DNA of 64,000 bases, from assembly GCF_964204645.1 (NCBI RefSeq), contig NC_134032.1, positions 11,396,275 to 11,460,274 of the forward strand, read 5' to 3'. Below the pieces are notes generated by a model that worked only from the letters and a program-made list of their open reading frames with translations, did no database searches and was not told the origin of the DNA. Position 1 is the stretch's first letter. Each line of letters opens with the position of its first letter. Source of the stretch: Tubulanus polymorphus. Taxonomy: Eukaryota; Animalia; Nemertea. Below, in pieces: positions 4,821-43,426 of this stretch. The translations under genes were made by a program, and so were the position numbers.

Positions 4821-5903
4821 TTACCCGTGAACACCATTTGAATCGCTGCTCTGTCGTCTTGAACAGCGACACTTACTCCAAAAATTTTTGAATATTCTTA
4901 TCGCTTCGGCCCTAAATCTGTCGTTAGTCCCGCAATATACGAAATAATTGACGCTCGAATCTAACGGGGTCATCACGTCAGACCCAAAAGATGATATACG
5001 GATTAGTGTATTCCGAACTTCATTGCCAACCGGCTTCGGTACACCTAAGTCAAATAGCATAACTCCATAAACCCAAAGCGAAGAAGGAAACTCTAAAATG
5101 ATGAATAAAATGACAATAGCGAGCGCCATTTTAGTCGCTTTTCGGTCGAGATTGCTTAACTTCGAATCTTGGGTGCCAAGATTTTGTCTATTTTTACCAA
5201 TTCGTTTCAGCAAATATATTAGAACGACATTGAGGGTTATAAGCAATAGAATCGGTATCAGACTCGTCAAAAGTGTCGTTAAAATCAGTTCTCCCCAATA
5301 ATGAAGACCGAACTGAATATCTGTTAATCCCCTTCGGGCCAGTATTGGAACGTAAAATTTTGTACATGTATCAAACCAATAGAGTAAATGGCTTATATTC
5401 ACAAAATAAGGAAGACCGAAGAAAGCGAAGAAAATGTATTGCAAGCAAACGCATATCAATAAGCGTCGTTTGGTGATGTGAGCCTGCGCGAACAGCGGGA
5501 AACTAAGACTTATAACCCGCTCCGTCGCTATCATAACCGTTATCCAGTTCCTCGTCAATTTCGTAGACCGGTTTAGGATAAACATACCAAAATACATCCA
5601 ATAAAACCCGATAAAACTTGAATCATAATGAACCTCGGCGCGTTGAATTGAAACCCCGTAAACTAATATATTCAGCCACGGACGCAGGACGTCGCGAAAG
5701 AATTTGACAGTGAGATAAGAAATATCAGCGACGGCCAAAGCTTCGAGCAGAAAGAGCGACCGGTGCTGCGACGATTGTCGTTTCAGGATCACGATACTGA
5801 GACTGTTGAAGAAAATACCGAACGTTATCGACATGGGTAGAAATGTGACTTGCTGTATGAATACACTTGTAAACTCGAAGTTTTTCGCCGCACTTTGATT
5901 CAT
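4821..5903 (-). CDS. Intronless rhodopsin-class peptide GPCR (FMRFamide/sex-peptide-receptor-like clade), copy 2
   Basis: 360-aa ORF with 7 hydrophobic segments, LAVAD, ERV, DSSVNYFVY and helix-8 FR motifs, and an N-terminal NQS sequon. Confidence 0.85.
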   Translation of the reverse strand: MNQSAAKNFEFTSVFIQQVTFLPMSITFGIFFNSLSIVILKRQSSQHRSLFLLEALAVADISYLTVKFFRDVLRPWLNILVYGVSIQRAEVHYDSSFIGFYWMYFGMFILNRSTKLTRNWITVMIATERVISLSFPLFAQAHITKRRLLICVCLQYIFFAFFGLPYFVNISHLLYWFDTCTKFYVPILARRGLTDIQFGLHYWGELILTTLLTSLIPILLLITLNVVLIYLLKRIGKNRQNLGTQDSKLSNLDRKATKMALAIVILFIILEFPSSLWVYGVMLFDLGVPKPVGNEVRNTLIRISSFGSDVMTPLDSSVNYFVYCGTNDRFRAEAIRIFKNFWSKCRCSRRQSSDSNGVHG

Positions 5904-7329
5904 TTTTCGACATTGCGTATCAGGTGCCGCATTAGAAAATATGCATTACCGTTACGAATTTGATATATACCACGAATCAGCGGTTCGGTTAGTCTGAACA
6001 CCAGACCCTGTACGAGTTCTCCTACACGTTAGGAACAACTGCTGTGGATACTATACAGTTCGGATCTTCGATTGAAAAACTGATTATCTAAACGCGCGTC
6101 TAAAATTCCGATGCATTATCCGTTTCTCTAATGCTGTTTTTTTTAAATATTAAGTTAGTACATTATTTTTGATGTACCGGACTGCCTGAAAAGTAAATAT
6201 ATACATATACATACGCACCACGCGTCATGTGTATTCAAGCCGGAAACATGAATAGATATGAACGTGCGTATCTAACAGGTTATAATTAGCGAGACTAAAA
6301 ACTTTCCGCATATGTAATTCAAATATGTCATTCAATCAGTTGAAGCCGTTCAGTTTTTGTGATTTGATTGATGTTTTTGCGTATTCTGTCTTTGTTTAGT
6401 TGAACCGGAGAACCGAAACTTCCGATTTTATGTACTTCGATTTCAACGACTGCTGTGGATACTATACAGTTCGGATCTTAGATTGAAAAACTGATTATCT
6501 AAACGCGCGTCTAAAATTCCGATGCATTATCCGTTCCCCTACTGCTGTTTTTAATATTAAGTTAGTACATTATTGTTGATGTACCGGACTGTCTGAAAAG
6601 TAAATATATACATATACATACGCACCACGCGTCATGTGTATTCAAGCCGGAAACATGAATAGATATGAACGTGCGTATCTAACAGGTTATAATTGCCAGG
6701 ACTCAAAAAAACTTTTTCCGCACATTATTAATGCATTCATTATTAAAATATGTCATTCAATCAGTTGAAACCCGTTTGTCGACCTTCCTTTCATAAAACC
6801 ATGTTAACCGTTGAACAGGATTCTAAATTCCCCTCATTTTCATAGCATGGTGGGGATGTTATAGCAGACGTACATTCGATCGTGGTCGACACAGACAAGA
6901 TCAAGAATACGAACAAGACTGTGCAGAAAACCCGTTATCGCTGCTTTGCAGCTATATTAAAAATCTATTTTTCAATCAGTTGAAACCGTTCAGTATTGTG
7001 ATTTGATTGATTGATGTCAGTAGGGCCTACGTACGTTTTTGCGTCTTCTGTCTTTGTTTACATGAACCAATTATGTACTTAGATTTCATTTGCATGAACT
7101 GTTTAAAGACAAACACGAACAACTTGGTTTTCAATCTTATTTATTACATAAATCTTACATCTTTTACTTGCAGGAGAAACAAACGAACAGATCGCTGTTG
7201 TATACAATGCCATTAGTCGTCTTCGTAGAAAACTGATATAATGTCAGTTTTCGCAAAAGGTTAGTGCCGCAAGGCTTCGTCGGCAAACCTGCGCTGAACT
7301 TGCGCACCCGGGCGAGTGTCTAGTGTGGC

Positions 7330-7485: not shown

Positions 7486-8210
7486 CTAGAAATCAAATGT
7501 GTTTGGGTCGACGTTATGAATGCGCTTCATGTGCTGTTTGCAGTTATATTTCAGATTAAAACGTTGCTCGCACATCGGACATTTAATCGGTTTTTCGCCG
7601 GTGTGAATTCGCTCGTGTATCGCCAAATTTACGCTAGTTTTCATCCTTTTACCGCAAAACTGACATTTAAACGGTCGTTCATCTAAATGAACTAGATTCA
7701 TGTGCTGTTTACAATGTGATTTCAGCGCGAAACATTTCTCACAAGTCGGGCATTTAAATGGTCGTTCATCGGTATGAACCAGTTTCATGTGCCGTTTACG
7801 GTTCGATTTCTGAGTAAAACATTGCTCGCACATTAAACATTTAAACGGTTTATCCCCGGTGTGAATTCGCTCGTGTTGTTTACATAATGCGGGAATATTA
7901 AACCATTTATCACAAAACTGACATTTGTATTTTTTACTATTGCCAGCCTTGAATTTCTCAGATGATACATGGCTATTCGGGCAAACATTGTGAACCTGCT
8001 TCATGTGCCGGTCACAGCTCGACTTCACCATGAAACATTGCTCGCACGTCAGACATTTAAACGGTTTTTTGCCGGTACTACCAGGCTCAATGTTACCCCC
8101 TTTACATCCTGTTGCTATTTTCAATCGACCTTGAGCATTGACCTTACCAGCGGGAAGACGACTCAGTTCAACAGACGGCAGTAATTCATTCGGCACGTCG
8201 TATCCGACAC
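7486..8210 (-). CDS. Variable terminal ZF exon, unit A, 6 C2H2 fingers
   Basis: Acceptor tttgtag|GTGTCGGATAC at 8210. Intact ORF ending DPNTFDF*. AATAAA on the minus strand at 7427-7432. Confidence 0.85.
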
Positions 8211-9444
8211 CTACAAAGAAACATTAGAATCAAATTTAAGCCTCATCTTCACAATTCCGCCTCTGAATCCATTGAGAATTGAACAACTGGTGGAATAATA
8301 AAGGGTAACAGAGATTGAAGACAAATATCATCCTGAAGAAACTAATTCGTTCCTTACGAAGTTATGATGGACTGTGGCAATCGAGGATTCCACTTGTGGC
8401 AAGCGAAGATCCACCTGTTCGCTAGTGCGCATTCAGACAATTCCCAAATTTCTCCTCAGATTCAATTAAAATCTATCCATAATTTCTCATATTCTATGAA
8501 TGGTGATTAATAAAATTCACGCTATATATCAACCTAAAGATCATCTGAGTTTATCAAGAGTAATGATTTGCCAAATTTCTGATGAGGGATGCTAAATATC
8601 TAGATAAAAGTTCATTCATCGAAAATGAACTAGACTTTGACGGGGTTGTCGCACTGATACACACGTCATCCTGGTGGGATGTCTAGCTGGTGGCACAGGA
8701 GTCCTCATTAACGGTTTTCTTTCTGATTAAAATATTGCTCAGAAATCGACTAGTGAATCGGTTTTTCATATGCACGAACTATCAAAAGACTAACACGAAA
8801 AACTTGGTTTTCAATCTTATTTATTTGGATAAATCTTACATCTTATACTCGAAGGAATAACATATGAACAGATCGCTGTTGCATTAGTCATCTTCGTAGA
8901 AAAGTGATATAATGTCAGTTTTCTTTCCAGCTAAAATGTTCCCCATTCCAACAAACTAACGAATTCGCGACAAAAATCTGTGCGAAAAATACATTTAAAA
9001 AAATTAAATTTTGGAAGCATTTTTTTCATCAAAAGGAAGGACTAAGAGTAAAAATAAAGACGATGTTTGTCCAAACTGATTGCAAAAGAAGCCCGACACT
9101 AGCACGAGTGCGTAGCTAATGACGTCATCTACGAGATTATGTCATTATTAGCCAATCAGAAATCCCGTTTTATATTTGCCAGGCTTTCTCCGTTATCCGT
9201 GAAATTGTGCAATCATAATAATAATCAGCGCGACTATACAACAGGCAATCTGGATTGGTGCCGCATGTACTTGCGCACCCGGTCTAGTGTGGCAGAGCTT
9301 CGTGCCGTGGCTGAGTTATAAGCGATGCCATCAGGTTCGAATCCCTGCTGATGGTGTTGAGTATGATCTGCAAGGTATAAAAACCTTTACTGAAAAATCA
9401 AATCTGATGATAACAATGATGATCCGTTTTAAGTAACATCAAAT

Positions 9445-10340
9445 TTAGAAATCAAACGTGTTTGGGTCGACGTCATGAATGCGTTTCATGTGCTGTTTAC
9501 GGTTATATTTCACATTAAAACACTCCTCGCACATCGGACATTTAAACGGTTTTTCGCCGGTGTGAATTCGCTCGTGTACCTCCAAATTTACCCTAGTTTT
9601 CATCCTTTTACCGCAAAACTGACATTTAAACGGTCGTTCATCTGAATGAACCAGTTTCACGTGCTGTTTACACTGTGATTTCAGCGCGAAACATTTCCCA
9701 CACACCTCACATTTAAACGGTTTTTCATCGGTATGAACCAGTTTCATGTGCACTTTACAGTTAGATTTCCACGTAAAACACGACTCGCACATTGGACATT
9801 TGAACGGTTTTTCGCCGGTGTGAATTCGCTCGTGTCGTTTAATGTCTGAGAGAAAAGTAAACCCTTGATCGCAAAAACGGCATTTAAACGGTCGTTCATC
9901 GGTATGAACCAGTCTCATGTGCGTTTTACGGTTTGATTTCTGAGTAAAACGTTGCTCGCACATCTGACATTTAAACGGTTTATCACCGGTGTGAATTCGC
10001 TCGTGTGTTTTACGTGATGCGGGAAAACTAAACCACTTATCGCAAAACCGACATTTGTACTTTTTACTATAGCGAGCCTTGACCTTCTCAGATGAAACAT
10101 GGCTATTCGGGCAAACATTATGAACCTGTTTCATGTGCCGGTCACAGCTTGATTTTACCATAAAACGTTTCTGACATGTCGGACATTTGAATGGTTTTTT
10201 GCAGTTACTTCCAGGGTCAATGTTACCCCCTTTACATCTTGTTGCTATTTTCAATCGACCTTGAGCATCAAACTTTCCAGCGGGCAGACGACTCAGTTCA
10301 ACAGACGGCAGTAATTCATATGGCACGACGTATCCGACAC
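9445..10340 (-). CDS. Variable terminal ZF exon, unit A, 8 C2H2 fingers
   Basis: Same phase-1 acceptor at 10340; intact ORF with TGEKPF-type linkers. Confidence 0.85.
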
Positions 10341-11064
10341 CTACAAAGAGTCATTAGAATCAAATTTAAGGTTCATCTTCACAATTCCGCGTCTGAATCC
10401 AGTGAGAATTGAACGACTGGTGAAATAATAAACAGAGCTTGAAGACAAATATCATCCTGAAGAAACTAATTCGTTCCTTACGAAGTTATGATGGTGTTTC
10501 ACGTGCAATGAGGACTCGTTCGACTGTGGCAATCGAGGATTCCACTTGTGGCAAGCAAACATCCACCTGTTCGTTAGTGTGCATTCAGACAACAATTCCC
10601 GAATTTCTCCTCAGATTCAATTAACTCTATCCATAATTTCTCATATTCTATGAATGGTGATTAATAAAATTCATGCTATATATGAACCTAAAGATCATCT
10701 GAGTTTATCGAGAAGAGTGATTTGCCTAATTTCGGATGGAGGCTAAAAATCTAGATAAAAGTTCATTCACTGAAAATGAACTAGATTTTGACAGGTTGTG
10801 ACACTGATACACACGTTATCAAGTGGGAGAGCTGGTGGCACGGAGTCCTCATTAACGGTTTTCATTCTGATTGAAATATTGCTCACACTTCGAATGTTAA
10901 AATGGTTTTTCATTTGCGTGAACTATCAAAGACAAACCCGGAGGTAATTTTGGTTTTCAATTAATTTATTTCTTATTCATTTCTTATTTATTTGATTAAT
11001 CTTACATCTTATATTCGCTTTTGTGACATATTAACAATTAACCATCTTCATAGAAAAACGATAA

Positions 11065-12349: not shown

Positions 12350-13336
12350 TAAGAAATCGAATGTTTGGCTCATGAATGCTTTTCATGTGTTGTTTACAGT
12401 TATATTTTCGATTGAATTGATCGAACATTTAAACGGTTTTTCGCCGGTGTGCACGCGCTCGTGTCGCTTCAAATGGTAACTAGTTTTCATCCATTTATCG
12501 CAAACATTTGAACGGTCGTTCATCGGAATGAACTTGTCTAATGTGCACTGTACAGGATCCTTTCCGACTAAAGCGTTGCCCGCACGTCGGACATTTAAAC
12601 GGTTTTTCACCGGTGTGAATTTGCTCGTGTTGCTTCAATTGGGTGCGATTTTTTATCCGTTTAGTGCAAAATTGACATCTAAACGGTCTTTCATTGGAGT
12701 GAACTTCTTTTATGTGCGTTTGACATGTTGATTTCTGCGTAAAACGTTGCTCGCGCGTCGGACATTTAAACGGTTTTTCGCCGGTGTGAATTCGCTCGTG
12801 TACCTTCAAACCGTAGCGAGTTTTCATCCATTTATAGCAAAACTGACATTTAAATGGTCTTTCATCGGTATGAACAAGTTTCATGTGCATGTTACAGTTC
12901 GATTTCCGAGTGAAAGCTTTCTTGCATATCGGACATTTGAACGGTTTTTTGCCGGAGTGAGTTCGCTCGTGTATATTCAAATAGTTGCGAGTTTTTAACC
13001 GTTTATCGCAAAACCGACATTTAAACAGTCTTTCATCCGTATGAACACGTTTAAAATGCACCTCACGGCTTCTTTTGAGCCTAAAACATTTCTCACATGT
13101 CGGACATTTAAACGGTTTTTCACTGGTGTGTGTTCGCTCACGCCGTGTACAATCTGCAGTCATCAACGCGTTAGACTTAGATCTATAGGCGGCTTCACTA
13201 GAACTAACAGGTTCGATGTTAACCTTTTCACATCCTGTCGCTATTCTAAATCGACCTTGAGCATTGTCCTTTCCAATTGGCAGACGACTCAGTTCAACCG
13301 ACGGCAATAACTTGCGCGGCACGTCGTATCCGACAC
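12350..13336 (-). CDS. Variable terminal ZF exon, unit A, ~7 fingers in frame then frameshifted tail (decaying)
   Basis: Acceptor at 13336; ORF to 12495. One Cys>Arg finger. A deletion near 12505 shifts further fingers out of frame. Confidence 0.7.
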
Positions 13337-13477
13337 CTACAAAGAGTTGTAAGAGAATCCAGATTTTAATTTATGGCGCATCAACATTTCAAACATCGTA
13401 TTTCGAGGTTGAATGAACAAAGCTGAAACAACGAAATAGATTCATGATCGGAGAATAAAATCAATAGATGCTACTCG

Positions 13478-14397
13478 TGAAAACCGTCTGCTAGTTTGTG
13501 AAATCAGTCTGCTAGTTAGTGAAATCAGTCTGCTAGCTTGTGAAATCAGTCTGCTAGTTTATGAAATCAATCTGCTAGTTTATGAAATCAGTCTGCTAGT
13601 TTATGAAATCAGTCTGCTGGTTTGTGAAATCAGCTTGCTAGTTTATGAAATCAGTCTGCTAGTTTGTGAAATCAGTCTGCTAGTTTGTGAAATCAGTCAG
13701 CTAGTTTGTGAAATCAGTCTGCTAGTTTGTGGAATCAGTCTGCTAGTTTGTGAAATCAGTCCGCTAGATTGTGAAATCAGTCTGCTAGTTTATGAAATCA
13801 ATCTGCTAGTTTATGAAATCAGTCTGCTAGTTTATGAAATCAGTCTGCTGGTTTGTGAAATCAGTCTGCTAGTTTGTGAAATCAGTCTGCTAGTTTGTGA
13901 AATCAGTCTGCTAGCTTGTGAAATCAGTCTGCTAGTTTATGAAATCAATCTGCTAGTTTATGAAATCAGTCTGCTAGTTTATGAAATCAGTCTGCTGGTT
14001 TGTGAAATCAGCTTGCTAGTTTATGAAATCAGTCTGCTAGTTTGTGAAATCAGTCTGCTAGTTTGTGAAATCAGTCAGCTAGTTTGTGAAATCAGTCTGC
14101 TAGTTTGTGGAATCAGTCTGCTAGTTTGTGAAATCAGTCTGCTAGTTTATGGAATCAGTCTGCTAGTTTATGGAATCAGCCTGCTAGTTTGTGAAATCAG
14201 TCTGCTAGTTCATGGAATCAGCCTGCTAGTTTATGGAATCAGCCTGCTAGTTTGTGAAATCAGCCTGCTAGTTTGTGAAATCAGTCCGCTAGATTGTGAA
14301 ATCAGTCTACTAGTTTATGGAATCAGTCTGCTAGTTTATGGAATCAGCCTGCTAGATTGTGAAATCAGTCTGCTAGTTTGTGAATCAGTCCGCTAGT
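13478..14397. repeat. 21-bp minisatellite (gaaatcagtctgctagtttgt), ~44 units
   Basis: Directly visible tandem repeat with variant units and repeated higher-order blocks. Confidence 0.98.
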
Positions 14398-14761
14398 TTC
14401 CAAGTTCCTGAATCGCGAATGTTTCCATGTTGAAGTTATGACGACATTTTAGGCGACATTTACAATGAGCTTTCTGCGTGAATCTCAAATCGCAATTGGA
14501 CATTTAAACGGACGTTCGCCGGTGTGCACGCATTCGTGTCGCGTTAAATCAATAAATCCTTTGAACAGCTTCCCACAAAACTGACATCTATGTTTCATGG
14601 TTGTGTCACCAGGTGGGGTATTTCCGTACTCAATGTAGAGATATATTTGCCAGTTCCGTCGATTTTGGTTTTTCGTTGTGACGCGGTATTTTTACGGCTG
14701 ACAGTCAACCATTTAGTACCAGAAATCGTCGGTTCCCTGGGCTCATCGGTGAAAGCGCCAC
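14393..14761 (-). pseudogene. Degenerate two-finger variable exon
   Basis: Acceptor ctctttccag|GT at 14761. Contains [34 protein letters not shown] and [10 protein letters not shown] in shifted frames. Confidence 0.65.
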
Positions 14762-16032
14762 CTGGAAAGAGCCATGAGAACCGATGATATGCGTGCGTTT
14801 AGATAATGACGTTACGTACGAAAGGGGGTCAGAACAAATTTCCGAGGACACAAACTAGAGCGGCGTTTAAACGACTTAAACCTAAAAATGTCGGTTTGAA
14901 GAGAAAAACTAGATATTCCGCATCCTTGGAAAAACAACAATGACGAGACCTAGAAAAATCCTGTTCCTCGCAGCTGACATCAAATATAATGGAGAGTCAT
15001 GGAATATTAACAGTTGCTAAAAAGGGTCACCTGAAATACAAACATTTATGGGCCTGGTTCCACAACAGGACTTAAGATCTAAAATTGAGGTTTGAGACTC
15101 TTTGAATCAAACTCAATCTTGTTCTGATATCACATCATCACTGTGGAACCAGCTCCGCAGTAAGTTCCTTTATAAAGTATGTTTGTTCTGGTACGCTCAC
15201 TTTTCCTTAACGCCTGCAAAATTGATTTTTCCCCAGTTCCCGCGCTCTAACATAGCTGAGGTTCATGCATACTTTATTAAACTAGGGTTCCAGGAACTTG
15301 GAAAGTGGTTTGACATCAGAAAATGTCAATATTCAACACCCCTCAGTGAACTGACATGCGTGCTGTGTCCGGTTTAAAAGTTGTCGCCGAAATCCAGACT
15401 ATTGAGGCGAATTTCTAGTTGTAGTCGAACAGGGAGATCGAATTGAAATAAATTTTCAATGATTTCAAATTCAAAATCAAGTGACAACTTTAGAACGATG
15501 GCCTTAAATCTATGTCTAATACTGTTAGGTTAGGTAGATGATAAGCCTAGCCTAGTTGCAACCATATATTGTTGATAATGGATCGCTCACATCAAAGTGT
15601 ATGACAGTGATTGAGAACTAGCTGCTCAAAAGTAGAACAGGGGCAACTGGCTGGAACTGGAGATAGATGGACGTTAACCAGTCGTAACCTAGCTCTCATT
15701 GACACATTCAAGCAATTGATTGTATCCAGCCAGTTGCTCTTGTGCGTCAAAAACTGCCCGGCAACAAGTTGTCTCCGACCAATCTCAGTGTTGATGTAGG
15801 CTAGGCTTTAAATTAACCGTCTTATATCAATCAGATATTTTTCAAAAATCAAAACGGAATATAACTCTTATTTTTCAGCTCTCAAAAACCACAGAAATTC
15901 TTTCTTCAATTAACAAGGCAAAACTGTACGGGTGGCAAAAGATTTGAGACTTTTGTTTTTTGAGTGGAATGCGCAAAATGTGGTGTTTAAAAACTGGACA
16001 AGTGAATTGATAGAATGGCTGTTAACACCTAC

Positions 16033-17226
16033 CTGACTGATCAAAATCTCCACTTGTTCCCGGTTGTGGATCGTGCTGTTGTTGTTGCACGATCTGTTGA
16101 GTTGAATAATTTTCATCATCGTCGCTTCCTGACGATATTTCAACCGGTTCTATTTTCATCAGTACATTCTTAACATCACCGTTACCTTGGTGATGTGATT
16201 GTTCGAATGGAAGCGTATTGATATCAGCGGTATTCGTATCAGTTAATTGTTCACTGTATTTGAGTTCGACTTTTTCAGGATTGGTGGCGCCACTAAAAAG
16301 TTCTAATTGTTCAAATGACGGAGAAGAACCTACGATCGATTCTAATTGTTCTAACTTGTAATCGCAGCTAGAGACCGCCGGGGGCGGGGGTATCGATAAT
16401 CCACTTTCACTCGACTGTTCAACGTTAGTCTCATTTCTAATTGTTGATGCTTTGTCAGCGTTTGAATCATCAGGAATCGTAGAATCATCCGATTCCTCCT
16501 CGGCATTTTTAATTCTTTTTAAAGTTGATTCGATTTCGGCGCTCGATAATATTTCACAACTGTTTGAATTAAGAACTGAGAAATTGACGGTTTCTGCCGA
16601 TGCTGAGCTGACCGGAGCTGTTGCCACCAATGACACAACATTCTCAGATTCATTCAATTGTTGCTGCGATGCAATATCAGTTACCGATGGTTTCAAGCCG
16701 ATTCCTGATTGTAACGATATTATCGGTGATTCACCACCAGGTGGAGCTGGTTTAACGGGTGTTGTTTGCGTAATAGGCTGGGTTGGTGTTTTCTGTTGTT
16801 GAAACTGAATATCAAGATTATGAACACTATTAGCCGGTGATATTTGACGGACTCCGGATTGGTTTCCCATATTCATAGGAGGAATGTTGATAGCCGGTGA
16901 AACGTGTTGAGGAGGTAAACCTCGTCCTCTTCCGCGACCTCCTCGATTGGGCGTCATTCTCTGTTGAGCTGGTAACAGACCGATCGGTTGCTGCCCGACA
17001 GCCGTCATTGTTTGTGATTGAACTCGTTGCTGTGGTAACGTCCCCTGTATAGCTGCACCTCCTCTCCGACGTTTCACAGCTTTTAAAACGTTCTGAGCGA
17101 CAGTTTTTGTTCTGCTTTGAACTTCAAATCGTCTTTGTTTTCCGGTTTTTGATTGATTCGTACCGATGTACATAACACCTCCATCTCCGGACATTTGATC
17201 TAGGCCAATTTGTCCTCTTTTCTGAT
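16033..17226 (-). CDS. Unit A constant exon 3 (Q/P/S-rich, RGG, acidic linker)
   Basis: Acceptor tttttgtgttcag|AT and donor TCAG|gtaggt; 1194 nt, phase 1-1. Confidence 0.8.
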
Positions 17227-17383
17227 CTGAACACAAAAAGTATATATTTACAGGGAATAAACCAATATTTAGACAATTTTAACCCTTTACTATTCCGATA
17301 GTGCCTTAGTGAGTTTTATTAGTTAATATAAGATTAAGCCAATCTAATCACTGAATTTGAGGATATAGTTTTTAAAGACGAAC

Positions 17384-17531
17384 CTTTAGTTTGACGTCGA
17401 GACATCCATCTAAACCAGGTATTATCATCAGCATCAATAACTAATTCATCTAACCAATCCATGTGTCGACGCAGACATTTTTTAAATGCATCCTCACGTA
17501 CGTGCACCTCGACACCTTCCAACAGCAACAT
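17384..17531 (-). CDS. Unit A constant exon 2 coding part: 49-aa N-terminal domain (exon starts at 17565)
   Basis: Acceptor ctaatttttcag| at 17565, AAAATG start, donor AAAG|gttcgt in phase 1. Peptide conserved in three copies up to the donor. Confidence 0.75.
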
Positions 17532-17876
17532 TTTAACGTCACTTCTCTAACTATCTATCTTACTCCTGAAAAATTAGAAATATTTTTGAGTTCAGTGGCC
17601 TAACTGCAGTAACAGTCACTTCTACTGTGTCGTGCTGGTATTATTATATAATAGAGTGAATGTAGTGAATGCGTCTCAGGGTTTTTTCGGGGAGTTCGTT
17701 TTTGGGAAGAGAGGGTATCTGAGGGTTCCTCCCCCAGGAAATTTCGCGCAAGCAGGCGCGTTCTAGTGCAATCTGAGGCGGATAGGTAGACTGGTTTTAC
17801 CATTTACTTTGCATTGTGCGATTTTATTTTGCTAATCTAGCAAATACGGACCAAGTGCCGAAGTGTGAAAATTTGA

Positions 17877-20803: not shown

Positions 20804-21926
20804 TCATTGGTGATGTACATATTTCATGTGCTTATTACAGCTTGATGTCTGCGAAAATGTTTCTCCCATATAGAATATTTAAACGGTTTTTCGCATAGTG
20901 TGTGAATTCGCTCGGGTTGTTTCAAATGGAAACTAGTTTTCATTCGTTTATCGCAAAACTGACATTTAAACGGTCGTTCAACGGTAAGAACCTGTTTCAA
21001 GTGAATGTACCAGCATGATTTCCAATGCAAAACATCGCTCACACTTTGAACCTTTTAACAGTTTTTCGACGGTGTGTTGGGTCAATTCGGCTCGACCACT
21101 TAATTTTTTATCGCAAAATTTACACTTAACGGTTGTTCATCGTTATGAACACGTTTCATGTGCGCTTTACAGTTTCCTTTCACCGCAAAACATCGCCCAC
21201 ACTTTGAACACTTAAACGGTTTTTCGCCGGTGTGAATTCGCTCGTGTCGTTTAATGTCTGTGAGAGAAGTAAACCCTTGATCACAAAACTGACATTTAAA
21301 CGGTCGTTCATCGGTATGAACCATTTTCATGTGGTGTTTACATTTTGATTTATGCCTAAAACATCGCTCACACTTTGAACATTTAAACGGTTTTTCGCCG
21401 GTGTGAATTCGCTCATGTAGTTTCAAATTTAAACTAGTTTTCATCCTTTTATCGCAAAACTGACATTTAGATGGTCGTTCATCGGTATGAACCCGTTTCA
21501 TGTGCGTTTTAAGGTTCGATTTCTGAGTAAAACATTTCTCACACTTTGAACATTTAAACGGTTTTTCGCCGGTGTGAATTCGCTCGTGTATTTTACGTAA
21601 TGCGGGAATATTAAACCATTTATCGCAAAACTGACATTTGTACTTGACCTTGTACTTGCCAGCCTTGACCTTCTCAGATGACACATGGCTTTTCGGGCAA
21701 ACATCATGAACCTGTTTCATGTGCCCGTCACAGCTTGATTTTACCGTGAAACATTTCTTGCACGTTAGACGTTTAAACGGTCTTTTGCCGGTACTTCCAG
21801 GGCCATTGTTATCCCATTCAAATCCTGTTGCTATTTTCAATCGACCTTCAGCATCAACTTCTCCAGCTGGCAGACGACTCAGTTCAACAGACGGCAACAA
21901 TTCACGCGGCACGTCGTATCCGACAC
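20804..21926 (-). CDS. Variable terminal ZF exon, unit B, ~7 fingers in frame then degenerate tail
   Basis: Acceptor at 21926; ORF to 21100. First finger has Cys>Arg. Frameshifted, decayed fingers continue to the HHQ* end at ~20804. Confidence 0.7.
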
Positions 21927-23286
21927 CTACAAAGAGTCATTAGAATCAAATTTAAGCCTCATCTTCACAATTCCGCCTCTGAATCCTGTGAGAATTGAAC
22001 AATTGGTGAAATGATAAAAGGTAACAGAGATTGAAGACAAATATCATCCTGAAAGAAACTAATTCGTTCCTTACGAAGTTATGATGGTGTTTCACGTGCA
22101 ATGAGGACTCGTTCGACTGTGGCAATCGAGGATTCCACTCGTGATAAGCGAAGATCCACCTGTTCGCTAGTGTGCATTCAGACAACAATTCCCGAATTTC
22201 TTCTCAATTAAAATCAATTCAATTCAATTAAAATCTACCCATAATTTCTCATATTATGGGTAAATAATATGATTAGTGGTGAAATGAACTAGATTTTGAC
22301 AGGGTTGTTGCAATGACACCCACGTTATCTAGTGGGAGAGCTGGTGGCACGGAGTCCTTATTAACGGTTTTCTTTCTGACTGAAATATTGCTCACACTTT
22401 GAATGTTAAAATGGTTTTTCATTTGCATGAACTGTCAAAGACAAACACAAAGATAATTTTGGTTTTCAATTTATTTCTTGTTTATTTCTTATTATTCTAT
22501 TTTTTTTTCTTATTTACTTGATAAATCTTACATCTCATCGCTTTTGTAACGTACTATCAATTAATCATCTCCATAGAAAAATTATTTAAAAAAAGTTTTC
22601 CAGCCACTTATTTTGAATCCAATACTGAAATACTTAAAATAACTCTCAAACTTTGCAGAAAAAAACTGCGGTGTTTCATATCTATAAATTACAGTGAACC
22701 CCAGATAAACCTCATCCCATTTACCGCCACCCCCGCCTACCACCAGGTTTTCCTAAATTGCATTTTTATACAAATACAACATTAAATAAAACACCCCCGA
22801 TATACCACCATACTCTCTACACAGGTAAAATCATTCTGCACCGATGTGGGCGGTATATCGGGGGCTGACTGTATTCTTAAACCCTGTATATAATAAATTT
22901 TATTAACTTCATAAGTTAACCCAATTATCTTTTCAACCTATAAATAATTCAAGTCTGTTTAAACTTAAACCTAACCTCAACCTAACATTCTACAAAACAA
23001 ACAGCACGTAACTCAAAGTCCTTTTGACATTCGACTTTTCAAAAATCTGATGCGTTCCGGTCGAGATCATAAATCCATTTGTTTCAAGCACTTATCGATT
23101 ACAGTTTCATTACAGTCCGAAGTGTTTGAATGGTTTTTCACTGGTTTGATGACAACTAACGACGATGATCAACTTCAACTAAAATTTGACCTAGAAATCG
23201 AATGAGTTTGGATCGTTATGAATACATTTCATGTGCTGTTAACCATTATATATCCGATTGAATTGATCGGAAATTTGAACGGTCTT

Positions 23287-24473
23287 TCATTGGTGATGTA
23301 CATATTTCATGTGCTTTTTACAGTTTGATGTCTGCGAAAAATGTTTCTCGCATATCGGACATTTAAACGGTTTTTCGCCGGTGTGAATTCGCTCGTGCTG
23401 CTGCAAAGTAAAGATAGTTTGCATCCGTTTGTCGCAGAACTGACATTTGAATGGTCGTTCATCGGAATGAACAGTTTTCATATGCCGTTCACAGTTCCCT
23501 TTCTGATTAAAACGTAGCCCGCACATTAAACATTCAAACGGTGTTTCACCGGTGTGAATTCGCTCGTGTTGTTTACATAATGCGGAATTATTAAACCATC
23601 TATCGCAAAAGTGACATTTGTACTTTTTACTATAGCCAGCTTTGACCTTCTCAGATGACACATGGCTATTTGAGCAAACATTATGAACTTGTTTCATATG
23701 CCGGTCACAGCTTGATTTCCACGTAAAACATCGCTCACACTTTGAACATTTTAACGGTTTTTCGCTGGTGTGAATTCGCTCGTGTTGTTTCAAATCTAAA
23801 CTAGTTATCATTCGTTTATCGCAAAACTGGCATTTAAACGGTCGTTCATTGGTATGAACCTGTTTCATGTGAATGTAACGGTTTGATGACTGCGAAAAAT
23901 GTTTCTCGCATATCGAACATTTAAACGGTTTTTCGCCAGTGTGAGTTCGCTCGTGTGTTTTACGTGATGTGGGAAAACGAAACCATTTATCGCAAAACTG
24001 GCATTTAAACGGTCGTTTAAACGGTCGTTTAACGGTATGAACCTGTTTCATGTGAAGGTTACAGCTTGATGACTGCGAAAAATGTTTCTCGCATATTGAA
24101 CATTTAAACGGTTTTTCGCCGGTGTGAATTCGCTCGTGTGTTTTACGAAATGCGGGAAAACGAAACCATTTATCGCAAAACTGACATTTGTACTTTTTAC
24201 TATGGCCAGTCTTGAATTTCTCAGATGGAACATGGCTATTCAGGCAAACATTATGAACAAGTTTCATGTGCCAGTCACAGCTTGATTTTACTTGGAAACG
24301 TTTCTCGCACGTCAGACATTTAAACGGTTTTTGGCCGGTACTTCCAGGGTCAATGTTACCCCCTTTACACCCTGTTGCTATTTTCAATCGACCTTGAGCA
24401 TCGACCATTCCAGCGGGCAGACGACTCAGTTCAACAGACGGCAGTAATTCATTCGGCACAACGTATCCGACAC
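23287..24473 (-). CDS. Variable terminal ZF exon, unit B, 11 fingers
   Basis: Acceptor at 24473; intact ORF. Confidence 0.85.
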
Positions 24474-25957
24474 CTACAAAGAGTCATTAGAATCAAATTT
24501 AAGCCTCATCTTCACAATTCCGCCTCTGAATCCATTGAGAATTGGACAACTGGTGAAATAATAAACAGAGCTTGAAGACAAATATCATCCTGAAGAAACT
24601 AGTTCGTTCCTTACGAAGTTATGATGGTGTTTCACGTGCAATGAGGACTCGTTCGACTGTGGCAATCGAGGATTCCACTCGTGGCAAGCGAACATCCACC
24701 TGTTCGCTAGTGTGCATTCAGACAACAATTACCGAATTTCTTCTCAATCAAAATCAATTCAATTCAATAAAAATCTACCCATGATTTCTCAAATTATGGG
24801 TAGATAATATGATTAGTGGTGATTCTAATATATGGTGATTAGTGAAATTCACGCTATATATGAACCTAAAGATCATCTGAGTTTATCAAGAGGAGTGATT
24901 AATTTGCCTAATTTCTGATGATGGGGGCTAAAAATCTAGATAAAAGTTAATTCACCGAAAATGAACTAGATTTTGACAGGGTTGTCGCACTGACACCCAC
25001 GTCATCTAGTGGGAGAGCTGGCGGCACAGAGTCCTCATTAATGGTTTTCTTTTTGACTGAAATTATGCTCACACTTTGAATGTTAATGGTTTTTCATTTG
25101 CATGAACTGTCAAAGACAAACACAGAGATAATTTTAGTTTTCAATTTATTTCTTCATTATTTCTTATTATCTTATTTTTTTCTTATTTATTTGATATATC
25201 TTACATCTTATACTCGCTTTTGTAACGTATTATCAATTAATCATCTCCGTAGAAAAATGATTTAAAAAAGTTTTCCAGCCACTTATTTTGAATCCAATTC
25301 TGAAATACTTAAAATAACTCTCAGATAAACCGTCATCCCATTTACCGCCACCCCCGCCTACCACCAGGTTTTCTTAATATGCATTTTTATACAAATACAA
25401 CATAATAAAACACCCCCGATATACCACCATACTCTCTACACAGGTAAAATCATTCTGCACCGATGTGGGCGGTATATCGGGGGCTGACTGTACTTTTAAA
25501 CCCTGTATATAATACATTTTATCAACTTCATAAGTTAACCCAATTATCTTTTCAACCTATAAATAATTCAAGTCTGTTTAAACTTAACCCTAACCTCAAC
25601 CTAACATTCTACAAAACAAACCGCACGTAACTCAAACTCCTTTTGACATTCAATCGACTTTTCAAAAATCTGATGCGTTCCGGTCGAGATCATGAATCCA
25701 CTTGTATCAAGCACTCATCGATTACAGTTTCCTTATAGTCTGAACTGTTTGAATGGTTTTTCACTGGTTTGTATCAGCATGTTATAACCAAGCACGTTAA
25801 AATTCAACTTCGATGATAACTAACGACGATGATCAACTTCAAATAGAATTTAATCTAGAAATCGAATGAGTTTTGGTCGTTATGAATACGTTTCATGTGC
25901 TGTTAACCATTATATATCCGATGGAATTGATCGGACATTTAAACATTAAACGGTCTT

Positions 25958-27187
25958 TCATTGGTGATGTACATATTTCATGTGCCTTTTACCGCTTGAT
26001 GTCCATGTAAAATGTTTCTCGCATATCGAACATTTAGACGGTTTTTCGCCGGTTTGAATTCGCTCGTGTTGTTTCAAATGGAATCTAGTTTTCATTCCTT
26101 TATCGCAAAACTGACATTTAAACGGTCGTTCATCTAAATGAACCTGTTTCATGTGTTGTTGACAGCTTGACGTCTGCGTAAAACGTTGCTCGCACATTGG
26201 ACATTTAAATCGTTTTTACACCGGTGTGAATTCGCTCGTGTTGTTTCAATTGGGAACTAGTTTTCATTCCTTTATCGCAAAACTGACATTTAAACGGTCG
26301 TTCATTGGAATGAACCCGTTTCATGTGCGCTTGACAATGTGATTTCAGCACGAAACATTTCTCACACGTCGGGCATTTAAACGGTCGCTCATCGGTATGA
26401 GAACGTTTCATGTGAATGTTACGGGTTGAAATCTGCGTAAAATGTTTCTCGCATATTGAACATTTAAACGGTTTTTCGCCTGTGTGAATTCGCTCGTGTT
26501 GTTTCAAATAGAAACTAGTTTTCATTCGTTTATCGCAAAACTGACATTTAAACGGTCGTTCATCGGTATGAACCCGTTCAATGTGCCGTTTACAGCTTGT
26601 TTTCCACAAAAAACATTTCTCACACTTTGAACATTTAAACGGTTTTTCGCCGGTGTGAATTCGTTCGTGTAGTTTCAAATGGTAACTAGTTTGCATTCCT
26701 TTATCGCAAAACTGACATTTAAACGGTCGTTTAAACGGTTGTTTAACGGTATGAACCTGTTTCATGTGAAGGTTACAGTGTGATGACTGCGAAAAATGTT
26801 TCTCGCATATTGAACATTTAAACGGGTTTTCGCCGGTGTGAATTCGCTCGTGTATTTTACGTAATGCGGGAAAACGAAACCATTTATCGCAAAACTGACA
26901 TTTGCACTTTTTACTATTGCCAGCCTTGAATTTCTCAGATGGAACATGGCTATTCAGGCAAACATTATGAACAAGTTTCATGTGCCAGTCACAGCTTGAT
27001 TTTACTGTGAAACGTTTCTCGCACGTCAGACATTTAAACGGTTTTTGGCCTGTACTTCCAGGACGAATGTTACCCCCTTTACACCCTGTTGCTATTTTCA
27101 ATCGACCTTGAGCATCGACCCTTCCAGCGGGCAGACGACTCAGTTCAACAGACGGCAGTAATTCATTCGGCACAACGTATCCGACAC
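25958..27187 (-). CDS. Variable terminal ZF exon, unit B, 9 fingers plus 3 more after a 1-bp frameshift
   Basis: Acceptor at 27187. ACC GGT GTA AAA ACG (extra T) at ~26218 splits ORFs 26205-27173 and 25958-26197. Confidence 0.75.
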
Positions 27188-30100
27188 CTACAAAGAGTCA
27201 TTAGAATCAAATTTAAGCCTCATCTTCACAATTCCGCCTCTGAATCGATTGAGAATTGAACAACTGGTGAAATAATAAAGGGTAACAGAGATTGAAGACA
27301 AATATCATCCTGAAGAAACTAATTCATTCCTTACGAAGTTATGATGGTTTTTCACGTGCAATGAGGACTTGTTCGATTGTGGCAATCGAGGATTCCACCA
27401 GGTTCGCAACAATTCCCGGATTTTTTCTCAAGATTCAATAAAATCTACCCATTATTTCTCATATTCTTTGAATGGTGATTAGTAAAATTCACTCTATATA
27501 TGAACCTAAAGATCATCTGAGTTTATCGAGAGGAGTGATTAATTTGCCTAATTTCTGATGAGGGAGGCTAAAAATCTAGATATCTTGTTCATTTTCAATG
27601 AACTAGATTTTAACAGGTTGTGACACTGACGCGGATGGTTGAAATCATTTTCGGCTTAAATTTATCGCCAGTTTTAGGACCTTAATGAATTTCACGAAAC
27701 CATGATCCTTAAAATGAGTCAATTGGTTAATTCTATTCGTAAATCAATTTACTACATTTGGCTACATTTCCTGAAGATTTCTGGCTCGATTCAACGTAAA
27801 TATGGACAGAAAACGTATTTTCATACGGAATTTTACTACCGCATTCACTCAACGACTCAGATCAATGACAACGACAGCAGATTATACGTAATTTAAGGTG
27901 AGAATCCGTAAACCAGGGAATGTTTCATATGATTTCTTTATAATATTAGTACATGTGGTGGCAAATGAGTACTCGGTGAAGCAATGATCATTGTTGGCTA
28001 GCTACTTTACCTAGCTATTTTGGGGGGATACACCTAGAATAGGCACTAAATGTAGTGAATAGAGACAGTGGAAAGCCTAAGTTGTTAGTAAGGGGCTGGT
28101 TTACACTTATGTGTACGACTATTTATTTCGATTACTTTCTTTCCAGCTATTATTCGTGGAATGAACTGGTCACTACGGTCCTCAATTCCTTTTCCAACTC
28201 TTGCAGCTGGTGGGAAATAAATTTAAACCACAGTGTGCAAGTGTACATTCTAAATCAAGCTTTTTCGTCATTGTCGTAACTTAAGCGCAACTGTCTCAGA
28301 TGCTGTAAGTACTTGACGTTTTATGCAATTGTTATTTTTTCAGTTGCCATGTTTACAATATTTGGATAAGTAATCAGTTATTTTACTTTCTTTCACTCCT
28401 CTATGATATTATATAACCGAGTAATTATTACATTTCATTTCTTGATTACAGGTGGAAAGAGGTCAGATGGCATGAAAATCGACTGTAGCTGACTAATTGG
28501 TGCGATTAGATCAGGCGTTGATGTTTCAAAAGGTGTAGCCAAAAAGCTTGTATCATCAGGGGGTAGACAAATATCCGAAGATAAATGAAAACTTCACCTC
28601 GTTGATCATCAGTTGATTTTGCTGTAATTTTTTCGCCTGGATAAATCAACATGTCAGTCAGTTCAAAATCTGTGTTCAGTAGAATTCCTTTCAATAAAAT
28701 GAAAACTTAATTGACTTATTTTTATGTATTCAAGATTGAAATTGAATGGATCTTAAAACCAGAGAAAGCATTTTTCAGAAATTTAAATAAAGGTCCAATG
28801 GCCCTGTGGCTCACCATTAAATCATTGAGTGCAAATATTGTCAAAAATATTATACTAAATATGAATCAATTTGGATTAGAAAAGTATGACAATTTATGCG
28901 CCTGCAGATGTGTGAGAGTGCTGTGTATACTATAATTGCCTATATATAGACTCGCTCAGGTGCTTACTAACACACCACAAACTGTAACCTATATTCGCAC
29001 ACACACGGCTGACAGCTGACGCGCCGGCTGACAGCTGACTTGCGTATATACAAATGTACTAGCGACGCAGTATTAGATTGACCGCAATTTCACAAGTCAG
29101 AATCCATCCATCGACAAAATGTAAATAATACAAACATCAGACTTTTTTCTAGAAATCAAAACAAATACAATAAGATGCGCGCCATTTTGTTTTCGGTTTC
29201 ACATTAGGCTTTCCCAATGACATCAGAAACGGCAAAATTCCCGGAATGTCCCGTATATCCCACAAACAGCCAATCACATTCATTGTAGCTCGGGTTACAA
29301 GGTCAACTCAAATAAATAGAAGCGAGGAAATTTAGGGGGTTTATACAGTGAGGGCCTGTAGGTCGAAAAGTACATTGAGATCAGTCGAACTAAAAACGGC
29401 AACACTTCCAGGAAGGATTGAACTTTTACATATTTCAATTGCAAGCATGCAAATTGTCATATGTAAAAACGTGCCATTACTTAGTGCTAAAAAGCAGGGT
29501 TTTTGCGTGTTTTTCAAGAATAAGTCCCCTAAAAATAACTCGATCACTATGAAATTTTTGTGGGCTCGAGAACTCATTAAGCCAAACCATGACACCAAAA
29601 ATATACACTATTGGTTCAACAGCCTATATATGTTTGTGCCTTGTTGACACACCGGTACTCTATTCATTTTCAATGAAAACTGCTTCATCAGACCGTTTGC
29701 ATAGGCAAACCTACGGTTCGCCAAAAATCCAAGACTTATAATCAAATTCTGTGAAGTCAGTTAAGGTCTTTTGCTTGAATCAAGCCGAGGGCTCAGATGG
29801 CTAAAATTCAACTCCTCAATGTCCTAGGACTCCTAAGCAAAAGGACTCCTAAGCAAGATGACCTGCCAAATCAAATGTAAATTAAGAAAGAAAACAACAC
29901 AATTGATCAGTCAATGACTTGCGTCTTCAAAAAAATTTTCCCGGAAATATTTCTTTTTCTGGCCACCACCTGCCTCGACACGCGACATTCAAGTTGATAC
30001 AACTGCCGGCACCGGGGGACCATATCTTCGGTATCCTCAAAGCCATTTTGATTAGACTTGGTACATAAGTACTTTTTACATGGTAGCCCTTTTGGATCCA

Positions 30101-32349: not shown

Positions 32350-33711
32350 CTGACTGAAAAAAATCTCCACTTGTTCCCGGTTGTCGATCGTGTTGTTGTT
32401 GTACAATTGGTTGAGTTGAATAATCTTCATCATCGTCGCTTCCTGACGATATTTCAACCGGTTCTATTTTCATCGGTCCATTTTTAACGCTGTCGTAACC
32501 TTGGTGATGATGTGATTGTTGGAATGGAAGCGTATTGATATCAGCGGTATTTGTATCAGTTAATTGTTCACTGTTTTCAAGTTCCACTTTTTCGGGATTG
32601 GCGGCGCCACTAAATAGTTCTAATTGTTCAAACGACGGAGCGGAATTGACGATCGATTCTAATTGTTCTAACCCGTTATTGCAGTTGGAGACAGCCAGGA
32701 GCGGGGTCGTCGATAATCCATCGTTTAATTGTTCACTGTATTTTCGTTCGATGTTTTCGCCAACAGTGGCGCTGCTAGATATTTGTAACTGTTCAAACGA
32801 CGGAGCGGAATTTACGATTGATTCTAATTGTTCTAATGTGTTATCGCAGCTGGAGACCGCCAGTGGCAGGGGTGTCCATAATCCACTTTCCCTCGGCAGT
32901 TCCACGTAAATTTCTTTTTCATTTGCTGACGACACATTGTCCTGTGAATTGGCAGGAATCGTAGAATCATCCGATTCCTCAACAGCATTTTTAATACTTT
33001 CTAAAGTTGATTCAATTTCGGCGCTCGATACAATTTCACAACCATTTGAATCTAGAACTGTGAAGTTGACGGTTTCCACCGATGCTGAGCTGACCGGAGC
33101 TGTTGCTATGGATGACACAACATTCTCAGATTCATTCAATTGTTGCTGTGATGCAATATCAGTTACCAATGGTTTCAAGCCGATTCCTGATTGTAACGAT
33201 ATTATCGGTGATTCACCACCAGGTGGAGCTGGTTTAACAGGTGTTGTTTGCGTGATAGGCTGGGTTGGCGTTTTCTGTTGTTGAAACTGATTATTAAGAT
33301 TATGATCACTACCAGCCAGTGATATATGACGGACTCCGGATTGGTTTCCCATATTCATAGGAGGAATGTCGATAGCCATTAAAACGTGACGAGGAGGTAA
33401 ACCTCGTCCTCTTCCTCTTCCGCGACCTCCTCGATTGGGCGTCATTCTCTGTTGAGCTGGTAACAGACCGATCGGTTGCTGCCCGACAGCCGTCATTGTT
33501 TGTGATTGTTGAACTCGTTGCTGCGGTAGCGCCCCCTGTACAGCTGCACCTCCTCTGCTACTTTTCACAGCTTTTAAAACATTCTGAGCGACAGTTTTTG
33601 TTCTGCTTTGAACTTCAAATCGTCTTTTTTGTCCGGTTTTTGATTGATTTGTGCCGATGTACATAACATCTCCATCTCCGGACCTTTGATTCATTTGTCC
33701 TCCCGTCTGAT
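32350..33711 (-). CDS. Unit B constant exon 3
   Basis: Acceptor ttcccttttgtattcag|AT and donor TCAG|gtaggc; 1362 nt, phase 1-1. Confidence 0.8.
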
Positions 33712-33849: not shown

Positions 33850-33997
33850 CATTAGTTTGACGTCGAGACATCCATCTAAACCAGGTATTATCATCAGCAT
33901 CAATAACTAATTCATCTAACCAATCCATGTGTCGACGCAGACAATTTTTAAATGCATCCTCGCGTACGTGCACCTCAACACCTTCCAACAGCAACAT
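33850..33997 (-). CDS. Unit B constant exon 2 coding part (exon starts at 34027)
   Basis: Acceptor ttttctattttcag|, ATG at 33997, donor AATG|gtttgt in phase 1. Confidence 0.75.
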
Positions 33998-42488: not shown

Positions 42489-43426
42489 CTACAAAGAGTC
42501 ATTAGAATCAAATTTAAGCCTCATCTTCACAATTCCGCCTCTGAATCGATTGAGAATTGAATGTTAAAATGGTTTTTCATTTGCATGAACTGTCAAAGAC
42601 AAACACAGAGATAATTTTGGTTTTCAATCTATTTCTTGTTTATTTATTATTTTATTTCTATTCTTATTTATTTGATAAATCTAACATCTCATACTGGCTT
42701 TTGTAACGTACTATCAATTAATCATCTCCATAGAAAAATGATTTAAAAAAAGTTTCCCAGCCACTTATTTTGAATCTAATACTAAAATACTAAAATTACT
42801 CTCAAACTTTGCGGATAGAAAACAGCTGTGTTTCAGATCTAAAAAATTACTCTTAAAAACTCAATCCTAACTTCAAAAAATTCTACAAAACAAACCTCAC
42901 GTAACTAAAACACCTTCTGACATTCAATCGACTTTTCAAAAATCTGATGCGTTCCGGTCGAGATCATGAATCCATTTGAACTACAGTCAACCCCCGATAT
43001 ACCGACACCCCGCCTACCGCCAGGTTTTCCCAATGTTCATCTCTATACAAATTCATAGTAAAACACCCTTACCGCCGAAATCGTTCTGCACCGATTTGGG
43101 CGGTATGTCGGGGGTCGACTGTAGCTTCAAGCATTCTTCTGTTACAGTTTCCTTACAGTCGGAACTGTTTTGGTTTTTCACTGGTTTGTATCAGCACGCG
43201 TTTATCAGATCACATGCTGATTTTAGTAAATTAGATTTTTTTCAATGCTCAGTAAATTAGATTTTAGTAAATTTTAGTAAGTTTTTTTTTTCATACATGA
43301 AAAACTCTTGAGGCGAATTTTTAGTTGTAGTCGAACAGCGAGATCAAATTGAAATAAATTTTCAATGATTTCAAATTCAAAATCAAAATCAAGTGACAAC
43401 TTTAAAACAATGGCCTTGAATCGAAG

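Follow-up and report, generated by a model that had tools for sequence, protein, structure and literature searches.

The question raised by a cluster of zinc-finger genes in Tubulanus polymorphus, a palaeonemertean ribbon worm (Nemertea), is what kind of module opens the proteins that they encode. We analyzed a stretch of 64,000 nucleotides from this cluster, hereafter the window (contig C8:11396275-11460274 of the 268-Mb T. polymorphus assembly), whose minus strand carries three units, A, B and C, each made up of a short domain exon, a second exon and finger exons. The original prediction had singled out the first coding exon of unit A, at 17384-17531 of the window, as encoding an unrecognized and lineage-specific N-terminal domain of 49 residues, a candidate analog of the KRAB, ZAD or BTB domains. 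Our analysis leaves little doubt that this exon belongs to a genuine and hitherto undescribed family of domains carried by transcription factors, and the domain seems to take the place held by BTB, KRAB or ZAD in other animals. The statement that best explains the evidence as a whole is that it is a selectively maintained N-terminal interaction domain of a transcription-factor family, and to this statement we attach a probability of about 0.6.

On the minus strand, translation of 17385-17531 yields exactly the 49 residues quoted in the original prediction; the plus-strand reading of 17384-17531 is interrupted by many stops and was discarded. The frame starts with the ATG at 17531 and its final full codon is AAA (17387-17385), followed by a G at 17384 that opens a split codon and by a GT donor at 17383-17382. 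Because this single base stands between the last full codon and the donor, intron 1 is in phase 1. The acceptor of exon 2, ttgtgttcAG, ends at 17227, and the joining of the G to the AT with which exon 2 begins at 17226 gives an Asp codon in the frame of a 1.2-kb open reading frame (ORF). The RefSeq protein XP_074657197.1 (P0005, LOC141910362) corresponds to unit A, with its residues 1-49 and 50-448 matching exons 1 and 2, respectively, at 100% identity, and its gene model runs from exon 1 through exon 2 to the finger exons. The exon, consisting of 49 codons and one base, is a genuine coding exon with the position and phase that had been proposed for it, and the RefSeq models join it to the rest of the gene, again as proposed. 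A signal peptide was dismissed on sight, the four hydrophobic residues at the start being followed by acidic ones in proteins of nuclear type. Immediately before the ATG lies a conserved short 5' leader (17532-17567, minus strand) behind an acceptor-like attttcAG site (AG at 17567-17566); the ~35-nucleotide leader and the acceptor-like motif are kept in most of 14 cluster copies, while the sequence farther upstream is not. Because of this conserved leader and site, a non-coding exon probably precedes the ATG exon in the cluster copies. A tblastn search of the window with the peptide recovered three minus-strand copies: 17385-17531 in unit A, 33851-33997 in unit B (domain exon 33850-33997, with K18N and K49N) and 48697-48843 in unit C (domain exon 48696-48843, with K18S and W26C). 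The near-invariance claimed for the three units is borne out, each of the other copies having two substitutions.

How far does this peptide extend beyond the window? A six-frame search of the genome recovered 37 loci with the single peptide and, with a 27-sequence profile (E<=0.01), 49 loci on 10 contigs, the best 29 of which have no internal stop; chance would not come close to producing such a number. Fifteen of the 49 are near-identical copies in one cluster of ~230 kb (C8, 11.41-11.64 Mb) that includes the window. The remaining 34 are dispersed loci, with ~18-60% identity to the copy in the window. The family pattern, V.E..LK.CL..H.D.LDEIV..AD..TW.RW...R (alignments A1-A3), contains two residues, W39 and W42, that are invariant even at ~18% identity to the window copy, and two others, D35 and R46, that are almost so. 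The N-terminus is conserved as a hydrophobic arm of the form M-Phi-Phi-Phi-(D/E). In line with the Trp-rich character that had been noted, each cluster copy typically contains three Trp, of which two are invariant family-wide. In all members examined the domain exon ends in phase 1, a few residues past R46. That the domain occupies a small exon of its own holds for the cluster copies, but in many dispersed paralogs a micro-exon of its own, located upstream, encodes the initial 4-5 residues (such as MLFL or MILL), and the domain exon of these genes is symmetric, phase 1-1. Part of the domain, its N-terminal half, is apparently duplicated in P0013/P0020 (locus L030/L045), with MILLDLSEVHILESALRHALQRD followed by a full second copy, and HMMER reports two stretches.

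The contrast in conservation between the domain exon and its surroundings, another element of the original prediction, is evident in the 14 cluster copies: the DNA identity of exon 1 is 96.5%, against 47% for the 300 bp upstream and 57% for the first 160 bp of intron 1. The pooled ratio of the non-synonymous to the synonymous substitution rate (dN/dS) of exon 1 is ~0.28 in these copies, a value well short of the ratio near 1 that would speak against a maintained protein. In comparisons between units A, B and C, the dN of exon 1 is 0.017-0.026 and its dS 0.072, from small counts (any two units differ by 2 synonymous and 2-3 non-synonymous changes), whereas exon 2 has a dN of 0.05-0.10, a dS of 0.13-0.21 and 22-80 gapped columns; the dN of exon 1 is 4-5 times below that of exon 2. 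The near-identity in the window could alternatively reflect gene conversion or a function at the nucleotide level, such as start context, splicing signals or a Met-hydrophobic N-degron, with no folded domain at all. This explanation can draw on the dS of exon 1, which is 2-3 times below that of exon 2 in the same units, on the short 5' leader and the first intron bases, which are conserved as well, and on the M-Phi-Phi-Phi N-terminus, which is retained even where it has its own micro-exon. However, dN is well below dS, a confident fold prediction is reproduced between paralogs (see below), and paralogs on 10 contigs, at ~18-60% identity, retain both the pattern and open frames, for which conversion offers no explanation. 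We consider an origin at the nucleotide level alone extremely unlikely. The persistence of the residue pattern in low-identity dispersed paralogs is, as judged from the alignments, the decisive sign of constraint at the protein level.

Models of two divergent members, obtained with AlphaFold2 and the family alignment, predict that the conserved pattern corresponds to a compact fold. For residues 1-62 of the window protein the predicted local distance difference test score (pLDDT) is 82.7, with a weak beta hairpin at residues 2-9 and helices at 13-22, 25-31 and from 36 onwards. For residues 1-50 of the paralog P0012 (33% identical) it is 86.7, with helices at 13-22, 24-33 and 36-49 and values >90 from residue 11. 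The monomer modeling that the original prediction called for points to a confidently predicted, compact three-helix module that is reproduced in two paralogs 33% identical, in which D35 is a probable helix cap. The domain contains 7-11 Asp or Glu residues and 2-3 Trp and has a median net charge of -3, which falls to -5 when its basic tail, the final seven residues, is left out. A three-helix topology and a TW.RW...RR motif with a basic end are also what might be expected of an accessory nucleic-acid-binding helix-turn-helix of the Myb/SANT- or homeodomain-like kind, containing Trp and a basic tail, and the weak rows of the fold searches do include DNA-binding helical proteins (STPR, HMG box). 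Yet the acidity just described would argue against DNA binding, helices 1 and 2 are just 7-10 residues long, and no helix-turn-helix, Myb or homeodomain profile of Pfam matched the domain in the peptide or in 17 members. These proteins, moreover, already possess dedicated DNA-binding domains. We regard a second, N-terminal one as highly improbable.

If the domain is real and folded, is it a known one in disguise? We ran hmmscan against Pfam (E<=1) with the peptide, 17 members singly and 9 full-length proteins, and found no domain match for the peptide, the 17 members or the N-termini of the 9 full proteins; the PAH (E 0.046, one member) and ABC_membrane (E 0.37) rows were rejected as being at chance level. 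The KRAB profile (PF01352) matched neither the peptide, the 17 members nor the full-length paralogs. There was likewise no match to zf-AD, the profile of ZAD (PF07776), and the domain has one conserved Cys (C19) against the four needed there, with 3 of 27 members devoid of Cys. BTB/POZ (PF00651) matched none of the domain-bearing proteins scanned, the domain having 44-51 residues and three predicted helices. As for SCAN (PF02023), there was no profile match, and no SCAN structure was among the matches listed in the fold searches. Neither the peptide nor the 27-sequence profile had a match beyond chance rows among PDB sequences, a designed repeat protein at E 4e-5 being rejected for want of a passing stretch. 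At the level of structure, Foldseek against the PDB gave nothing at E<=0.001 (no match for the window model and one, at E 3.9, for the P0012 model), the ESM Atlas gave no usable match by features and only unrelated bacterial or viral proteins by shape (template modeling score <=0.53), and VIA-align gave no match. A word search with alignment A2 matched only P0017, and one with residues 1-50 of P0012 returned only its own isoforms, missing known paralogs, so that its blank is uninformative. The claim that the domain is not a recognizable BTB, KRAB, SCAN, ZAD or SET domain is supported by the Pfam, PDB sequence and fold searches.

We also used HMMER to compare a 17-sequence profile exhaustively with 1.84 billion representative proteins (E<=0.001). 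It matched 31 proteins, of which 30 are genuine and one, P0031, was rejected as a repeat artifact. In all the genuine matches the domain is N-terminal, at residues 1-49 or just behind a short leader. Twenty of the matches were looked up, and 18 of the 18 with a source name are entries of T. polymorphus labeled 'uncharacterized protein'. P0017 is a 78-residue ORF from the assembly GCA_044232415.1. Its identity to the closest T. polymorphus locus is no higher than 75-79%, which means that the domain occurs in at least one other genome. No protein of any known family was matched in this search, and a transposon origin was rejected on the ground that neither a transposase nor any other known family appeared. 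As far as this profile search reaches, the domain appears lineage-restricted, as had been predicted, its matches being those of T. polymorphus and the single ORF of GCA_044232415.1. These blanks would also be accounted for if the domain belonged to a known family (ancestral KRAB, SCAN, a BTB fragment, the F-box D domain or the TFIIS N-terminal domain) but had diverged far and was too short to be recognized; short helical domains are hard to match, and ancestral KRAB-like motifs have been reported from invertebrates (PMC8835667). Set against such a hidden relationship are the 17 members without a Pfam family save for the two chance-level rows, the 27-sequence profile without a PDB sequence match and the 1.84 billion proteins among which no known-family protein was matched, and we judge it very unlikely. 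In the literature we found no description of such a domain, the nearest concept being FiNZ of cyprinid fish.

The domain is associated with DNA-binding domains. We examined ~9 kb downstream of the domain at 20 dispersed loci, and C2H2 motifs are present on the same strand in 20/20 and on the opposite strand in 0/20; by C2H2 pattern, fingers are found in 24 of the 30 retrieved domain-bearing proteins with an intact N-terminus. The association with fingers is not strict: P0015 (C7, locus L039/L024), one of the remaining proteins, has a homeodomain instead (PF00046, E 8e-20), with no finger in the representative isoform. Because P0015 carries a homeodomain, the domain is the head of DNA-binding transcription factors in general and not of finger proteins alone. 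Finger exons lie downstream at the P0015 locus too, and the gene may, to judge from this arrangement, switch between classes of DNA-binding domains. P0009 (the C8:11631639 unit), a member from the cluster, has at residues ~560-827 a long alternative C-terminus that is Cys/His-rich and has neither classical fingers nor a Pfam match.

In paralogs, variable ends are attached to a constant part in the manner of the lola and mod(mdg4) genes, in which common 5' exons are followed by mutually exclusive DNA-binding terminal exons. This arrangement is found in the paralog LOC141908711 (L042), the isoforms X1, X2 and X5 of which have residues 1-297 in common and then three different terminal finger exons, and LOC141901926 has two alternative endings. 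In the window, three or four phase-matched finger exons lie behind each domain exon and use the same acceptor and phase, yet P0005 chains them and one RNA-like contig ends finger-less. A layout like that of KRAB zinc-finger proteins, which had been proposed, did not hold: a linker exon of ~400 residues intervenes, there are several finger exons per unit, and the alternative terminal exons of the paralogs are those of the lola layout. The linker has a recurrent motif of its own, psi-K-x-E-[PD], found in 22 of the 30 domain-bearing proteins as against a mean of 0.77 and a maximum of 4 for shuffled linkers. SUMO acceptor sites have as their consensus psi-K-x-E with acidic residues behind it. The linker motif may be used as a SUMO site here, and repression by these factors may in fact reside in it.

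These features allow a comparison with known systems. The likeness to the BTB/POZ domains of the insect genes lola, mod(mdg4), fruitless and broad is that of a constant N-terminal module and common exons leading to alternative terminal finger exons; it is shown in LOC141908711 and suggested in the window by the 3-4 phase-matched finger exons per unit. Unlike BTB, the domain has no profile match, 49 residues as opposed to ~95-120 and three predicted helices as opposed to an alpha/beta fold, and these genes differ from lola-type genes in belonging to the phylum Nemertea and in that one member ends in a homeodomain. KRAB of the tetrapod KRAB zinc-finger proteins (KZFPs) is comparable in being small, N-terminal and encoded by a separate exon, in clustered, fast-duplicating finger genes with variable finger number; the differences are the absence of a Pfam match, another sequence pattern, the long linker and the several finger exons, and we know of no TRIM28-type partner for the T. 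polymorphus domain. ZAD in arthropods and SCAN in vertebrates are likewise lineage-specific N-terminal domains of finger proteins, and both mediate dimerization. ZAD differs in needing four zinc-binding Cys where one conserved Cys is present here, and SCAN in being an 80-residue five-helix domain where 49 residues and three helices are predicted here. FiNZ, a Glu-rich domain of 28 residues in cyprinid fish that is joined directly to a single finger exon (Wells et al., 10.1101/2022.11.29.518450), is similar in being a lineage-restricted short N-terminal domain without similarity to known domains, encoded by its own exon upstream of the fingers in tandem clusters. With ~49 residues, a predicted fold, a ~400-residue linker exon, dispersed old paralogs and a homeodomain, the T. 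polymorphus domain is set apart from FiNZ as described there. As for the D (dimerization) domain of the F-box proteins beta-TrCP and Cdc4, its scores lie below the stated noise level of the tool, the sequences show no similarity (7-9% identity) and the protein context is unrelated.

On this evidence the domain, of ~45-50 residues, has a hydrophobic N-terminal arm (M-Phi-Phi-Phi-D/E) followed by an acidic module, confidently predicted to form three helices, with two invariant Trp, and in every case it opens the constant part of a transcription-factor gene (~49 loci in T. polymorphus). Behind it stands a long disordered linker with the psi-K-x-E-P/acidic motif of the SUMO-consensus type and, last, the DNA-binding part, typically C2H2 arrays, often as alternative phase-matched terminal exons, and in one gene a homeodomain. 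We propose that in such proteins the domain would equip the constant region for protein-protein interaction, a function that we consider quite probable. Its favored form would be the self- or hetero-association of isoforms and paralogs, the part played by BTB in insect lola/mod(mdg4) and by ZAD or SCAN in other finger families; this is a more tentative proposal whose chances we place somewhat below even. We favor association because the gene layout is the one paired with BTB in insects, because the conserved residues have a structural look and do not suggest a single partner surface, because the conserved hydrophobic N-terminal arm has lower confidence in the monomer model, and because the linker already holds a candidate effector motif. 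This SUMO-type motif could supply the effector function, leaving the domain free for assembly.

The main rival to this proposal is that the domain is itself a cofactor-recruiting effector, a true analog of KRAB or FiNZ, which either docks one corepressor or, as an acidic activation domain, binds a coactivator. Its acidic and bulky-hydrophobic-rich composition is that of many activation domains, and the polar D35, T38 and R46 are kept across paralogs ~18-40% identical, as expected if one partner were common to all. FiNZ (10.1101/2022.11.29.518450) offers a precedent, being a repressor exon at the N-terminus of finger genes that is specific to one lineage. On the other hand, activation and KRAB-type domains taken alone are usually predicted to be disordered, whereas here a confident compact fold is predicted for two divergent paralogs; the conserved SUMO-type motif of the linker could already give repression; and a lola-like gene layout classically goes with an oligomerization domain. 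An effector of this kind appears to us possible though on balance unlikely, and self- or hetero-association through the domain remains our preferred form of interaction.

Several considerations weigh against the proposal of a selectively maintained interaction domain. The interaction role is a prediction from sequence and monomer models, and an acidic helix rich in Trp, Phe and Leu is also compatible with a domain for activation or for the docking of a cofactor. Conservation at W39, W42, the hydrophobic positions and D35 looks structural and points to no particular partner surface. The dS of exon 1 (0.07-0.085) is lower than that of exon 2 (0.13-0.21), and because of this difference gene conversion or nucleotide-level constraint is suggested to add to the near-identity within the cluster. 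The apparent lineage restriction may stem partly from the poor detectability of a 49-residue profile and from the small number of annotated nemertean proteomes. Lastly, contigs from four public runs, short ones from runs whose kind was not recorded, were placed on 14450-17600, and the junction of exons 1 and 2 was not seen in them, a result that neither supports nor refutes it.

The remainder of the window holds the parts downstream of the domain exons, which lie on the minus strand. Exon 2 of unit A (16033-17226), the low-complexity linker of ~400 residues that corresponds to P0005 residues 50-448, is in phase 1 at both ends and contains no Pfam domain. By motif scan, a SUMO-consensus/acidic motif, MKIEPVEISSGSDDDE, lies inside it at 16112-16159, and likewise at 32426-32473 in a linker exon. 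Unit A exon 3 (14595-14761) adds, on translation, 55 finger-less residues in frame and ends with a TGA at 14597-14595. Run X2 covers the exons without the intron between exons 2 and 3, and one RNA-like contig of this run joins exon 2 to the exon starting at 14761, with intron ends GT..AG on the minus strand. Splicing to exon 3, on which the original prediction depended, is observed for the step from exon 2 to exon 3 in this contig and was not seen for the step from exon 1 to exon 2 in the short contigs. At the donor of exon 2, run X3 has a loose end for which no place in the window was found. A lone C2H2 finger sits in a different frame of exon 3, which could be a decayed finger exon giving a finger-less and possibly dominant-negative isoform. 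Just downstream of exon 3 and the lone decayed finger lies a 21-bp minisatellite of 44 copies with 91% match (13477-14399), which is absent from units B and C.

Unit A continues with three finger exons, the first of which (12498-13337) has 6 fingers behind a conserved acceptor and a 45-residue VGYDVP...GRLKIATG linker, whereas the second (9448-10341) and third (7489-8214) share its acceptor and phase and have 8 and 6 fingers. Interleaved with the finger exons of unit A are two single-exon ORFs, 1141-2112 and 4824-5945 (both minus strand), which match Srw-type seven-transmembrane receptors of the rhodopsin family (PF10324, E ~5e-14). Unit B has exon 2 at 32350-33711 and three finger exons within 21103-27188 (ORFs 26208-27197, 23290-24483 and 21103-21936, with 9, 11 and 6 fingers), and unit C has exon 2 at 47129-48538 and a finger exon with 12 fingers at 41263-42489. 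The next unit upstream is represented by a finger exon with 27 fingers (56206-58773) and by the end of its exon 2 (63706-64000). The eight finger exons of the window (7489-58782) have a common tttgtAG acceptor and a common phase, each is preceded by a conserved intron block of ~120 bp, and each opens with a conserved 45-residue lead-in (VGYDVP..LPSVELSRLPAG..GRLKIATG). Equivalent exons differ in how many fingers they encode (6 to 27), with 12 versus 27 at equivalent positions. The P0005 model chains four finger exons, the lead-in being repeated mid-protein, and this chaining may be a prediction artifact. P0025, a model of RefSeq type, runs from exon 2 of the upstream unit (63766-63999) to exon 2 of unit C and on to the unit C finger exon, omitting the 27-finger exon and the unit C domain exon. 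Some chimerism is probable among the automatic gene models of this cluster.

What would this domain mean for zinc-finger families at large? Lineage-specific N-terminal domains such as KRAB, SCAN, ZAD, FiNZ and BTB set what large zinc-finger families do, and each of them opened a field. The T. polymorphus domain may be another of this kind, from a phylum in which functional genomics has hardly begun; it comes with a clean family of ~49 genes, a confidently predicted fold, a gene layout reminiscent of insect lola and an unusual set of partners, namely fingers and a homeodomain. The family is new, yet it falls within a known kind, that of lineage-specific N-terminal domains of finger factors combined with lola-type genes with variable ends. 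In a broader reading, for and against which we see the odds as evenly balanced, nemerteans, or at least Tubulanus, would have invented a new small assembly or effector domain as a universal constant head, with DNA-binding ends (various finger sets or even a homeodomain) chosen by alternative terminal exons, an independent and BTB-free re-invention of the lola/mod(mdg4) design combined with tandem amplification like that of the KZFPs. The family offers a chance to test the repeated convergence on a constant interaction head, a SUMO-type linker and a variable DNA reader. A new Pfam entry would be warranted, and it would bring to an end the 'uncharacterized' annotation of these proteins.
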